DNA of 62,476 nt from Amoeboaphelidium protococcarum X5. Lineage: Eukaryota > Fungi > Aphelidiomycota. The stretch lies in contig JALDTO010000235.1 of the NCBI GenBank assembly GCA_023515725.1, forward strand, positions 715,381 to 777,856, written 5' to 3'. The first letter of the stretch is position 1; every line of letters begins with the position of its first letter. The notes beneath the pieces were generated by a model that was given only the letters and a program-made list of their open reading frames with translations, did no database searches and was not told the origin of the DNA. Of this stretch, positions 56,730-62,476 are shown piece by piece. Made by a program: the position numbers and the translations under genes.

Positions 56730-57259
56730 TCATTAAAAGTTTTAAATAAACTTGATAGAGGATGGATGGTGAGGTATTGACTGAGAGCGACCACGCTGCT
56801 GATAATTTGGCGATTTAGTAGCCACAGGAGATTTCAAATTACAGAGTGGATTGTTTGAACGCTGGATCGGAGACGGCATCACGTAGTTGGAAGGCTAATC
56901 GCTGTGCTAATAAGATCCGACGCTGTGCACAGATAGAGTAGGTCTTTTGAGCTGAGACATTGATTGATTGCTAGAGCATTGTGGCAGCGGTGCTTGGATT
57001 GTATCAGCAGATTCATTGTTGGAGCGCGGCTCTGGGGTTTTACTCAATCCTGTCATTATTGACGCGCGTTCATCATTATCCATCACATCTTATTGTTGCA
57101 CTTTCAGAAATACAGGCTGTGCAGAATGCGGTCTAATTGGCGTTACAGTTATTATATGTTGCCTTTGAGGCAGCGGGTGCACAGGCGAAGTTTTACAAGA
57201 CTACACATAGAGTTATCAGATTGAAACGCACATTTAAATAGTTAACAGCTTACCATCAT
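56730..57259 (-). CDS. Possible Ser/Pro/Gln-rich low-complexity protein with one 5' intron
   Basis: ATGATG/GTAAGC...GTAG then an open code-6 frame of ~155 codons ending TAA-TGA; no family motif. Confidence 0.4.
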
Positions 57260-57607
57260 CTAATTCGTGATATTTCAATATTCAGTTTTAAAAAAAGGAC
57301 TTTTGGCTCAAAGTCTTCAGCTTACTTACTTTTAGAGAAGAGAAATGGTACAAGTGTGAACTGCAATCGGACACTTCCATGCCAAGTATCACACTGATTG
57401 GTTGATTGCAACTTCGCCGTTGCACAGACTCAATCTCGTGACAATGCGCCTTCTTAAAGGGAGCGCTCTGATTGGATCGGAAGTACCGTATGTATGGTAA
57501 ACTGCTATAGTGTCTAAAAAATCAATCCATAAAGATTCAGCAATAATGTACCATCTATTATTCAATCACTCTAATAGTTTCATCTTTAATTCTATCTAGA
57601 AGTCTCT

Positions 57608-60600
57608 TCATGGGGTACTATATACGCTCAGTGATCCCATATCAATAAAAAGTCGTCCAACATGAATAGCAGCTCCGGCCAGGATGATTTAATGAATAGT
57701 CACATATGACACCACCTTCATTCCGATCGAGGGAACAACAATGAGAAAATTAGGTAAAACCATCATCAGTCGTGCCAGACCCTTCAGCAAAATATCAACC
57801 GTGCTAATACCTTCAACCTTGGAATCTGTATCTCTAGCGAGGATAAAATCTTTAACCATCACGTTGATGATCATGTACACATTCGGCACAGCAGACAAGA
57901 GCAAACCAATAAAAGCACCCCAAGGAAATCCAGTAATCTATGGCCAAGTGGCCATCCATCCAGTTAGGAAACCGAGAAATTGCGTAAGCCAACCGATAAA
58001 TCTTACGTTGACACCAACCGTAGTCAGAGTGTCTGTGTACCAAGACCAGGGAAAGTTGCACATGAGAGAGAGGAATTGGAACGGCATCCGTATTAGAAAT
58101 AGCACAGAGTTCAAGTCAGTTACGAAACCAACCAATGCAGAGAGAAACTGCCCGACAGAATATGCGGATCCTAGTATGTAGGAAACAGATTTGCGGTACA
58201 TATTTCGAAGTCGAGTAGAATTCTGGTTCGGCACCTGCATGGCAAAGTCAACCAGATTGTCTACGTACTTCTCAGGTTAAGAGGTGGCCACTAGCACATT
58301 AACTTCCTGCTCTGTAAATATATTCTTGCCAGCATTAAACATTTTGAATCCAACAGTGACAGGTAAAGCGGCACACAGAGAAAATAGACCATACAGTGTC
58401 AACTAAGCTTTGCCACGGGTCACCACTTTCTCATAAAAGTCTGTGATGAATGGAATCCTAAGACGAACGCTCATGATCTTGTCAAATATGTTCAGCAGCA
58501 GATTGAAATACAACAAGATGACCTGCAACGCCTCTGCAACCAGAATCTATATTGAATATTAGAATAATCGACTAATTGTTCCAAATATAGCAGTAAAATT
58601 CCAACTTCGTTAGCCCAGCTCATTTCCAAGCGATTTGAACTCCTGCAAAATAGCAGACGCATTATTTTTCATTATATCAGACATGCTCTTGATAGTATCG
58701 GATGCGAGCTATTTAAATGATGCATGATCAGCAGGATTAATATCAGCTTACAATTGACCAATATTGTTAGACACGATATCACCAACATAGGTACCCTGAA
58801 TGTCAGCCGGACCACCACTACCTTGGAACTAAGTATTGAGAGCAGGATTGGACGTCAAGTTCTAATAAAGTTATCTATTAGACGTTGTGACCAGCGATCC
58901 GAAAGAATCAAACTGACCAGTAGTGAACAACGTGCTAGCTTGAGATGATAGATTACCCAGCGTCTCCACCATGCTCGATAGATCATTACTGAATCTTCCA
59001 TTGGCACCAGTGACATTAGTTCTGATGAATGTCGGCATCTTGGCGTAGTGAGAGAGCAAGATCTTGTGGTTCATCAAAACGTCATCCCAATTGAACAGTG
59101 CAACGATGAACTTGAATATGTCGCGTATGACGAGGCCAATTTTCTTTAATATTCCAACAAGCACAGGTACTAGAGTCTAAACTTACTTGACTAGAAGTTC
59201 AATTGTTCCCTTGGGCCCTTTGATAATCAGATTCAGTCCAAACTCTATAGGCGTAACAAAAATAACCTCACAGTCCTTGACAGCTTGAACCAAATCATCA
59301 ATACCCAGTCCTTTATTGATCATCTCGCCAAATGGTACCACCGCAATAACATCTCTCATCGCTTCTACAGAATTCACAGCAGCACTTTTCACACCAGCAT
59401 TGAAGCTATTTATGAATCCATTCTTGCCCTCCTTCCATGCAGTGGCATTAAAGAATGACTTTGGCAAAGTGACAAATACGTCTTTAAACACGTCGCCAAC
59501 GGATTGGGCAGCAGTTTTTATCTTGCCCCACAAGTTACTAAAGAAACTACGCTTATGAAGCCGAACTTTTCTACCTGCTTGAACTCTATCATATTCTGCA
59601 ATCTCCAATTGTCGCTTCCGTATAGATTTAAAGGTGTGCTTAATGAAGCGAACTCTTCCATCAGATCCATCTTTGTCACGATTGAATCGAATCTCAAAAG
59701 GCTCTTAAACATCATTGGATATCCGTCTTTAACTTTAAGCGCCACTATACACAGTTTGAGCATAAACAAAATTGCTATGAGGATGATAAGCAGCTTTACA
59801 ACTTTTCTGGCGCTTCAAATCTTCAAATAAAGATCGTCTAAGGAGCCGCGGATGACTTTCATCAGTCGACACTATATTACTTTACAGAATCGGGAGAATA
59901 AGGCTCTTCATAGTACTAGCCACGGCGTCAATATCTCCATTGGACGGCACTTCAGTGTTGTTGAACTTATCCTACATATACATTTAGAGCCGCACAGGAT
60001 CTATACTGGCAAGACTGTGTAAAGCCGCCGTATTGACAGGGAAGGCAACAGCTTCATAGTCAGGCATAAAATCAGCATGTACTTTAATCAAGGGCATGTG
60101 AAGCGCGTCTTCGTCAGATATCTCATCAGGGTGAACCACGGAAAATACCACTTTGCCCAACATATTGGATTGCATATAAAAATACTGATCCTGTTTTACT
60201 GTACGCAGCTAATTAACACCAAGAGTATCATTCCATTGAGAAGAGAAAATCTATAAATCGCCAGGACCATCGTGCCATAGAGTCAATACAATGTTAGGGA
60301 CAGACAAATCTCCAAGTAAATCATTCTAACCCGTCCTTGGCTCTACTACAAATCTATGCGCCGACACATTTCTAAAGCATGGATCATCTTTACAATCACC
60401 AACACTCCCTTCTTAATTGTAGTCTTGCATAAATTTACTCTGCACCTAAATCCAATAAGGAGATTTCGAAATCCAGCATCGTCCATTCACAGCAACATAA
60501 TCAGGCGGGCATCCATCAACGACATATTAGTGATAATCAGCTGCAAATCCACCAGCCTCAGAATTATTATGCATAAGAGATTACGATTAGTTATTCTACT

Positions 60601-60958
60601 ACTAAAAATTAACACTGAAGTCTTTCAGTATATCTGGAATCATTTCCTCTTCATCTATCTGTGCGGTGATATTAGCAGAGATCACATCCTTATCTGGCAT
60701 CGTAAACGTGGTATTATCATTGAATAACTCATATTTTAAAGAGTCTAAAACTTTACTGCTATTAGTGTTCATTGACACTGTTTCATTGACTCCAGTAGTT
60801 AAATTATTTCGCGTAACTGTATAAGTCATATTGGTCTATATCAAATCCTCAGCATCGGTGACATTCATCACACTCTAACAATTTACAACCATAATCGTCC
60901 ATGCAATGAACGTAAACAGCATCTATTGTACTATATATTACCGCTGCATTAACATCAT
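57608..60958 (-). CDS. Large (~1115 aa) putatively secreted protein with hydrophobic helical C-terminal third; function unknown
   Basis: Six track fragments share one code-6 frame; N-terminal hydrophobic signal (MLFTFIAWTIMVVNC), Cys-rich segment, KR-SFFSNLWGKIK, LFNWDDVL, IPFITDFY, several TM-like helices. Confidence 0.8.
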
Positions 60959-61206
60959 CAATTCTAATTTCCGTATTATACTATTGTATTATTATTATAA
61001 TCTACTAGAAGGTAAGAAAGGCGGCGCACAGACGATTACAAGATCTGTGATTACATCGGTGTAAGGCAGCATATATTATCGACTTGCCCCTGATCACGGT
61101 ATTTAATCTGATAAGACTCGCGTCCGTCACCTGTTTTTTTTTCTCCTTATCATCATATGACATTGTTTCAACTAACGCATCACGTAATACCGAGTTGTCG
61201 TATAAC

Positions 61207-62327
61207 ATGGAACAAAACACGTTTACATCGGTGATTTAATCCATTGAGAATTGTTTGCAATGTTGCATATGTTTGTCTTTACTCTCTGGGCCAGTTCGAA
61301 CTGGCTGTCTTCACGTGTTTTGCAAGTAGTGTTTAGACACTCATCTATAGGAAAGTTTGAATAGTCAACAAGGTACATCAGCTGCTTGTCCTCTCTGTTA
61401 CAAAAGATTGAATCTGGGGAGTATCTTGATTGATAAGAAGATTGAAAAGGTTGTGGTCAATTTTCTATAATGCAAGCAACTGCTATAGGACAAAATGTAA
61501 TTAGGACAGCTTATGAACGCGTCGTAATAGTCTCCCACCACGGAAGATCCTATTCCCAAGTTGAATGACAAAAGTGAACGGAGCGCGTCTCTGAAACAGA
61601 AAACAAGGGTGCCGCAAACTCTGAAACGAAGCAACACCACAGATTTAAGTTTGTTCTCTGTGAAACGCCCTCATAAGGTTACTTCTGTGTAAAGGCCTAG
61701 TACTTCATATACAAGGCAACAGAATGATACGTTGATATCGAAGAAGGCTCGGACTTGTTCAATGATGCCACTTGCGAATGACAGTGACTTATCATAGCTG
61801 AAGAAAACTAAAGAATAGCCTCGTGAAGTTGTCGTGTGTTTTAGTGGATTTGATCCGGATGTGGGGCTGCCCAAGTTTATCAACTCTGAAAAGTTTGCTT
61901 AGTATGGGATGGATTTGAAATTCACATACAACATTGAGTAGCCAACTACCCATTTGGTGGTGGAAGGAAACGTAGCAAGAGTTCCACCAGAGACCTTCAA
62001 AACTCTTCTAGCATCCATCAGACGCGTTGCCATCATTGAATTGAGATGGCTGATTGACAGTTACTATGCCTAGCGTTGGCTGCACGAAGATTAGTATTTG
62101 ATCAAAAGTCCTGTTAAGTACTAAAAGTTTTAATTAGACCGTGTGGAAACGTTCTTTAGTCGCTGCTGCTTAGTCCCATACGGTGCTCTGAACTCTTTGA
62201 CTTACGAGAATATCAAGCAGATATCCTAGTAGTTATCAACATAAACTGTCAATATCAAGAGTCTACAGTCCGTGAATGTTGTAGACAAAGTGGCGAATAT
62301 TTTAATAATTGTGGGACTAGAGACAGG
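61207..62327 (+). CDS. BRCA1/BARD1-like RING + BRCT protein, 3'-truncated by the telomere (no stop codon)
   Basis: C3HC4 RING CCICLSLLSGPVRTGCLHVFCKQC...CPLC; BRCT VVCFSGF...TTHLVV...TFKTLLA...WLIDS...WLHEDQY; the frame continues into the repeats. Confidence 0.8.
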
Positions 62328-62476
62328 CAGGGTTAGGGCAGGGTTAGGGTTAGGGCAGGGTTAGGGCAGGGTTAGGGCAGAGTTAGGCAGGGTTAGCAGG
62401 GTTAGGGCAGGGTTAGGGGCAGGGTTAGGGGCAGGGTTAGGGTTAGGGCAGGGTTAGGGCAGGGTTAGGGTTAGGG
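62326..62476 (+). repeat. Telomeric array of mixed TTAGGG and CAGGG units (dominant 11-mer TTAGGGCAGGG)
   Basis: G-rich strand runs 5'->3' to the end of the sequence: cagggttagggcagggttagggttagggcaggg... Confidence 0.95.

Follow-up and report, generated by a model that had tools for sequence, protein, structure and literature searches.

The closest parallel to the locus described here is telomere healing in Plasmodium falciparum. Five chromosome ends of the P. falciparum reference strain carry telomere repeats in or next to coding regions and are devoid of subtelomeric elements (PMC5550746), and deletions of pfhrp2 arise by telomere healing (PMC11458181). The same process operates at de novo telomere addition sites in yeast and at human neotelomeres (PMC10055226, PMC4427916, PMC11293586). 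Among ciliates, programmed or age-related formation of de novo telomeres at internal sites is described in Tetrahymena (PMC13368176) and Paramecium (PMC13076228).

To this background we add a chromosome end from Amoeboaphelidium protococcarum. We analyzed a 62,476-nt stretch of contig C233 (C233:715381-777856; hereafter the window) in the assembly with the locus-tag strain MIR68, which comprises 23.6 Mb in 346 contigs. The organism is an aphelid, a parasitoid of algae, and belongs to a lineage sister to Fungi. The window ends in telomere repeats that follow a coding sequence directly. We conclude that C233 very probably underwent a break within a BRCA1-like gene that was healed by telomerase with loss of the distal segment, and that the event was recent and tolerated. 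The features at this end are as follows, with the junction placed by base-by-base comparison with two intact copies of the gene, C200 (from the same strain) and L075 (from a sister strain).

57608..61072, reverse strand: last complete gene before the chromosome end, a 1154-codon open frame
61207..62324, forward strand: truncated RING plus BRCT-like open reading frame, 373 of 418 codons
62324..62325, no strand: break and telomere-addition junction
62325..62476, forward strand: telomere array of 152 nt, starting AGG-CAGGG-TTAGGG and made up mostly of TTAGGGCAGGG units

Translation with table 6 (TAA and TAG read as Gln) gave a frame that is open from the ATG at position 61,207 (frame 1) through the window's final base, as the first-pass annotation had claimed for a RING-BRCT frame lacking a stop; the template ends physically before any in-frame stop is reached. 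TAA or TAG serves as an in-frame Gln codon at 22 of the 373 gene codons, and TGA at none. Beyond these codons the frame continues as a telomere-encoded tail of repeated R/V/A/G/L/Q. The terminal array, with which the contig ends, is built irregularly from CAGGG and TTAGGG units. Six occurrences of the 17-mer TTAGGGCAGGGTTAGGG were counted in the window, all of them at its end (expectation from shuffles, 0). Because TGA is absent from both strands of the 152-nt array (62325-62476), the array is open in all six frames, and the earlier remark that this telomere is TGA-free and open was therefore correct. The last complete gene before the chromosome end is annotated in the sister strain as a protein of 1116 aa without a Pfam domain, and is collinear with C200 and both sister-strain copies. 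At the opposite end of the window, TTATTCGGCCC occurs four times with irregular spacing within the first 93 bases.

A second copy of the truncated gene is present in MIR68 at C200:465301-466419. It is 94% identical to the open reading frame of the window and extends 45 codons further, to a TGA; the extra codons include those for a conserved ..VVSAQWLIDS.. helix. The protein of this intact copy, P0001 (KAI3635259.1, MIR68_006825), is the sole MIR68 entry in its 90% cluster, whose two other proteins, 418 and 417 aa long, come from the sister strain MP228 (GCA_023515745.1). The NCBI annotation of the full-length protein gives the same picture, with one entry in MIR68 and two in the sister strain. 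Both sister copies are chromosome-internal, deep inside contigs of 2.83 and 3.25 Mb, and the genes that come after them encode Misato/Tubulin_3, a DnaJ-CSL protein, RPN5, a Myb protein and a Kelch protein. The first-pass annotation had suggested looking for a copy that continues through the second BRCT-like repeat to a TGA, and C200 and the two sister copies are three such copies. In each of them an intact progenitor or homologous sequence runs through the junction point, which supports the proposal made at the outset that the end arose by de novo telomere healing of a break.

C233 and C200 are collinear at 93-94% identity for at least 20 kb, with similarity ending at window base 62,325; C200 (733,122 bp) runs for another 267 kb past the gene and terminates in a telomere of its own. 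The window is 97-97.6% identical to both sister copies over 11 kb, up to base 62,324 or 62,325. In the last 2.3 kb before the junction (60,000 to 62,324), it differs from L075 at a single base, and over 1119 nt of the truncated frame there are 2 differences from that strain's intact gene, one of the two being the junction base. Since the broken allele is essentially identical to an intact sister-strain allele, the event appears to be recent. The persistence of the unbroken haplotype in the sister strain likewise makes the break younger than the split of the two strains' haplotype copies.

Most regions that we examined are present in two copies, about 90-94% identical. This two-copy state agrees with a report in which A. 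protococcarum is said to have had a genome-wide duplication, and which gives a GC content of about 40.5% for the published assembly of one strain (PMC10608142). Across window positions 57,000-62,324 the C233 haplotype combines stretches of both sister-strain copies, L075 and L076, with no differences from L076 in the 250-bp bins from 58,750 to 60,000. A mosaic of this kind is expected from recombination or gene conversion between haplotypes common to the strains.

With the broken allele, its diverged partner and a near-identical sister allele all available, the position of the break and the start of the added sequence are resolved to within a single base.

L075, intact haplotype: ..GGGACTAGAGACT TCCGATCACC..
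Window (C233): ..GGGACTAGAGAC AGG CAGGG TTAGGG..
C200 and the other sister copy: A replaces T at the base following GAGAC

The final base that the window has in common with the identical intact haplotype is C at 62,324: L075 reads GAGACT|TCCGATC and the window reads GAGAC|AGGCAGGGTTAGGG. The A at 62,325 may belong to the gene, as it does in C200, or may be where the added sequence starts, and homology of the window to C200 and to both sister copies stops at 62,324/62,325. Judged from these alignments, no more than C or CA at the junction is native, and the whole sequence from (A)GG on is an addition. Terminal repeats, with the G strand 3′ outward, are thus fused directly to unique sequence. 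The 40 nt ahead of the junction are neither G-rich nor telomere-like. Complementarity to the template, deduced from the repeat unit in place of the telomerase RNA template itself, amounts to zero to a few nucleotides, with no long telomere-like seed. The junction fits addition primed by a very short match to the repeat unit. The first-pass annotation had proposed a more specific seed, the gene's own CAGG. This idea fails because the gene has no CAGG of its own: none is found at the junction in the intact copies.

We next turn to the DNA that should lie beyond the junction. For the 8.4 kb that lies beyond the gene in L075, the sole matches in the MIR68 genome are at 89-91% identity, on C200 and on a partial duplicate in C264. 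A copy of this segment from the C233 lineage would show about 97-100% identity, and none is present in the assembly. We therefore consider the distal DNA of the C233 lineage to be absent from the assembly. When distal C200 was used as a query, no homeologous partner contig was found in the assembly. At this level, the distal segment of the same haplotype is lost, and C233 appears as a terminal deletion and not as a translocation or a two-piece fission. The absence of the haplotype's distal DNA points to a terminal deletion that is recent, confined to this strain and healed by a telomere added de novo. Distal hemizygosity is read from absence from the assembly over about 25 kb sampled of the 267 kb, and in an assembly of 346 contigs missing DNA could in principle be an assembly gap.

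A translocation of the distal segment onto C264 was considered and rejected, because the two patches found there are 94-98% like C200 and just 90% like the C233-type sister haplotype. The C264 sequence (C264:1659456-1667926) is an incomplete second copy, in inverted orientation, of the sequence immediately beyond the RING-BRCT gene; it contains part of a 291-aa open reading frame followed by Misato and the next gene, and is of C200 lineage (94-98% identical to C200). C200 itself carries, relative to both sister copies, a 15.6-kb insertion (C200:467565-483194) between the 291-aa open reading frame and the Misato gene. Pieces of this insertion are repeated on C164, C284, C264, C135, C146, C192 and C205, and it is probably rich in mobile elements.

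The protein domains affected by the break were assigned on the intact allele and transferred to the window.

61258..61398, forward strand: C3HC4 RING finger, residues 18-64 (Pfam on the intact allele, P0001)
61798..62070, forward strand: first BRCT-like repeat, residues ~198-288 (hhalign, language-model neighbors)
62119..62324, forward strand: N-terminal ~60% of the second BRCT-like repeat, residues ~305-373 (hhalign)

Four Pfam RING models scored above their cut-offs on P0001, among them zf-RING_UBOX (34.2 bits, cut-off 25.2) and zf-C3HC4 (33.1 bits, cut-off 21); the window's own 29-aa RING piece matched zf-C3HC4_2 with an E value of 1e-4. The top four matches of the P0001 RING to solved structures (PDB) were human BRCA1 RING chains (E ~1e-8), in an alignment that spans residues 7-81 and includes the helix ahead of the finger. 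A BARD1 structure matched with E 3e-4.

For the C-terminal part, the hhalign comparison used a profile built from 16 BRCT domains of this genome that Pfam had confirmed. Both repeats aligned end to end, the first with P = 0.009 and the second (intact residues 305-410) with P = 0.0009, and the top neighbors in a protein-language-model comparison were all BRCT clusters (score 0.89). The Pfam models RTT107_BRCT_5, BRCT_3, BRCT and BRCT_2 gave sub-threshold matches on P0001, all within residues 373-418, i.e., in the part that is deleted in the window. The first BRCT-like repeat is a tentative assignment, since it had no Pfam match. A small HMM built from the genome's own BRCT domains scored the C200 translation at 11.3 bits, a weak score that is nonetheless above 500 of 500 shuffles. 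A genome scan with PF00533 at up to E <= 10 did not pick up the RING-BRCT locus, and the stop-free pieces of the BRCT region had no match in either Pfam or PDB.

Two protein searches, one with a 43-aa piece and one with residues 195-418, recovered no homologues outside A. protococcarum. The exhaustive representative search with the stop-free 43-aa piece returned only the protein's own cluster (P0001), the word-based search with residues 195-418 returned only the protein itself, and an Atlas search with the 43-aa piece gave no usable match. For lack of homologues, no alignment could be built and structure prediction failed: AlphaFold run without an alignment on the whole protein and on residues 195-418 gave unusable models (pLDDT 34-38). 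Taken together, the gene product is probably a BRCA1-like RING protein with two probable BRCT repeats. In the first-pass description of a BRCA1-like RING-BRCT gene, the RING half is thus upheld by Pfam and by the BRCA1 structures, and the BRCT half, with its sub-threshold Pfam matches, stays provisional.

The likeness to human BRCA1, a RING E3 ligase with tandem BRCT repeats, consists of an N-terminal C3HC4 RING with a flanking helix and of two C-terminal BRCT-like repeats; the A. protococcarum protein differs in its length of 418 aa and in having BRCT repeats that fall below Pfam thresholds. The cut takes off 45 residues, with which the second BRCT-like repeat loses its final strand and its Trp-bearing helix, and the stop codon and 3′ UTR are also gone from the C233 allele. 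In human BRCA1, even short C-terminal truncations destabilize the BRCT fold. A dN/dS of 0.26 between the alleles on C233 and C200 indicates that selection acted on the gene until recently. Both alleles also retain the RING cysteines, and the C233 allele was therefore in all likelihood a working gene until the break. Having lost the final strand and helix of the second repeat, the stop and the 3′ UTR, and yielding a non-stop transcript if any, it is now predicted to be null, with the C200 copy presumably supplying the function. A transcript of this allele that reached the chromosome end would meet no stop codon.

The composite repeat caps 13 contig ends, and its G-rich strand runs 3′ outward at every one of them; C214, of 756 kb, is a telomere-to-telomere contig. 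At all 13 telomeres unique DNA directly abuts the array without a subtelomeric repeat, and the 1.4-kb flanks show no mutual similarity. The lack of a subtelomere, noticed in the first-pass annotation at the end of C233, is therefore a property of the other ends as well. We compared three further ends, those of C275, C137 and C244, with partner contigs. The C275 telomere cuts a formin-like gene that is intact on C146 (junction ..TTGCAA|GGGCAGGG), and the C137 telomere takes the place of the 5′ half of a RhoGEF-like gene whose intact form is on C181 (junction ..GACGGCA|GGGTAGCAGGG); both junctions read ..CA|GGG. For the C244 end, a second copy was looked for in the assembly and none was found. 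Genes at telomeres were counted only if the frame exceeded 350 codons or the partner was intact; since TGA is the sole stop, open frames of 100-200 codons beside other telomeres are not evidence of genes. The 40-nt flanks of the three mapped junctions (C233, C275 and C137) have only a terminal C/CA in common.

Evidence from sequencing runs was taken from Logan contigs of runs X1, X4, X5 and X10. Run X4 contains both haplotypes of the MIR68 genome, as contig pairs with 0% and ~6-8% differences, and also the C214 telomere junction. Among the X4 contigs listed, the C200 type alone passes base 62,325, and the C233-type allele is absent from ~62,088-62,325. No contig bridging unique sequence and telomere was found among the Logan contigs listed for the four runs, and the case for the junction is accordingly made by the deposited assembly, the missing distal DNA and the annotation count. 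Contigs that pass 62,325 into TCCGATCACC were present in 4 of 4 runs. Among the runs with intact-type contigs are a biofilm metagenome of 2013 and a data set of 2021 that comes from a third strain. In the latter, depth was zero in the 61066-61211 bin, which is nearly all intergenic spacer, so this data set may be RNA. Run X10 (another strain; possibly RNA, although RNA is not the recorded source of any run) had the intact form only. Both alleles of the sister strain were found in run X1 over the gene's 3′ end, together with the 3-nt deletion that belongs to the 417-residue protein. A metagenome scan with a pattern fitting both alleles just before the junction gave no match.

In X1, window positions 60242-62030 are represented by a single 1789-nt contig with double depth and one difference from the window; the two copies in the sister-strain assembly have six differences across the same interval. 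This may reflect a loss-of-heterozygosity tract or an assembly difference.

Other explanations for the C233 end have to be weighed against healing followed by loss. The break could be real and healed but subclonal, confined to part of the nuclei or cells, with an intact C233 persisting and the assembler having kept the truncated form. Aphelids form multinucleate plasmodia, and the 1.67-kb telomere-bearing fragment C275 resembles a minor structural variant. We nevertheless regard a subclonal break as unlikely, given that the distal 8.4 kb of the C233 lineage is found nowhere in the assembly, that the full-length protein is annotated once in MIR68 as opposed to twice in the sister strain, and that X4 has one contig type past the junction among those listed. 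An assembly artefact, in which a chimeric read or mis-join added repeats to a contig end of other origin (e.g., a loss-of-heterozygosity boundary), is very improbable: homology to three independent intact copies stops exactly where correctly oriented, organism-typical repeats start, the first added unit is in register with the CAGGG unit, and 13 ends have the same architecture. A loss-of-heterozygosity boundary would also be expected to yield a contig with C233 sequence on the left and TCCGATC on the right, and none is listed in X4. What speaks for an artefact is that no bridging read is among those listed, along with the interstitial telomere array at C98:1311.8 kb and the chimeric look of C275.

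The first-pass annotation had also offered frequent or programmed fragmentation into minichromosomes. Site-specific fragmentation of the ciliate or nematode type, programmed or recurrent and with both sides of the break kept, would account for several telomeres lying inside genes, but it is extremely unlikely. C233 is at least 778 kb long and C214 is a 756-kb contig with two telomeres; neither the partner copy in the same nucleus nor either of the sister-strain copies is broken; no distal piece bearing its own telomere is kept; and the junction flanks share no motif beyond C/CA.

Under the reading that we favor, healing of a single break with loss of the distal DNA, a double-strand break would have occurred at codon 373/374 of the 418-codon RING plus tandem-BRCT gene in one homeologous copy, that on C233. 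Telomerase would have extended the centromere-proximal 3′ end, ...GAGAC or ...GAGACA, by base-pairing over 1-2 nt with the CAGGG portion of its template, producing the new telomere AGG-CAGGG-TTAGGG.... The acentric distal segment, which measures ~267 kb on the partner C200, would then have been lost, and with it (as judged from C200) Misato, the DnaJ/CSL protein, RPN5, the Myb protein and Kelch genes. Loss of the segment would leave the strain hemizygous both for it and for the intact gene copy, a state made tolerable by the second copy that the duplicated genome provides. We infer that telomerase acted here and that the deletion extended to the old chromosome end.

The resemblance to P. falciparum covers repeats fused into coding sequence and healed ends without subtelomeric elements (PMC5550746, PMC11458181), as well as a distal loss that is strain- or clone-specific and very short template complementarity at the junction. 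Losses in P. falciparum, however, occur in haploid blood stages and affect mostly dispensable subtelomeric families ~10-100 kb from the end, whereas in A. protococcarum a two-copy genome (duplicated or hybrid) buffers a deletion of ~267 kb with housekeeping genes, and none of the 13 ends examined has a canonical subtelomere. At SiRTAs of Saccharomyces cerevisiae addition likewise begins at 1-2 nt matching the telomerase template (PMC10055226), but these hotspots are Cdc13-binding TG-rich tracts and the A. protococcarum junction flank is not G-rich. Human neotelomeres (18q, PMC4427916; cancer, PMC11293586) are similar in combining a heterozygous terminal deletion, repeats placed on unique sequence and a retained intact homologue; they consist of pure TTAGGG, in contrast to the irregular CAGGG/TTAGGG mix of A. 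protococcarum. Ciliates share the formation of de novo telomeres at internal sites (PMC13368176, PMC13076228) and the reading of TAA and TAG as Gln, which makes telomeres stop-free. Unlike ciliates, A. protococcarum has neither germline/soma nuclear dualism nor a breakage signal, one of two copies is affected, and chromosomes stay at 0.75 Mb or above.

Compared with these systems, what is new here is the organism, the gene struck, the size and content of a deletion tolerated in a two-copy genome, and the availability of an identical intact haplotype. Chromosome ends in this lineage sister to Fungi would be, at least in part, recent healed breaks without subtelomeres, and a duplicated genome would survive loss of hundreds of kilobases, housekeeping genes included. 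With TGA as the only stop, any gene cut in this way acquires a stop-less frame through the telomere. For annotation, genes at contig ends in these assemblies are best treated as truncated alleles, and strain-to-strain differences in gene content may partly be terminal deletions. A broader and rather doubtful idea is that A. protococcarum has no protected subtelomeres at all and undergoes continual end loss and healing, with its duplicated (hybrid-type) genome acting as a buffer. If so, terminal attrition would be a major ongoing route of heterozygosity loss and genome reduction in the lineage, and loss of one copy of a BRCA1-like gene could itself tilt repair from homologous recombination toward healing.

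Several minor observations concern the arrays themselves. Most of the 13 telomeres have a proximal zone of CAGGG-only or CAGGGTAG units and switch distally to TTAGGGCAGGG units. The C233 and C57 telomeres have no CAGGG-only zone (0 CAGGG-CAGGG steps; 13 TTAGGG in C233), which could mean that they are young or that the template is used in a different mode. C275, 1667 bp long, comprises the telomere and the 5′ part of the formin-like gene (90% identical to C146:690978-692196), and further holds 232 bp that are 98.7% identical to C214:205298-205529, a stretch in which C214 lacks formin sequence; the contig may be chimeric or represent a minor structural variant. The interstitial telomere-repeat array of C98 (~200 nt, about 1311780-1311990, within L022, C98:1310295-1313311) sits between AT-rich unique sequence and coding-looking sequence, and could stem from fusion of an end to an internal site, from insertion of a linear element or from a mis-join.
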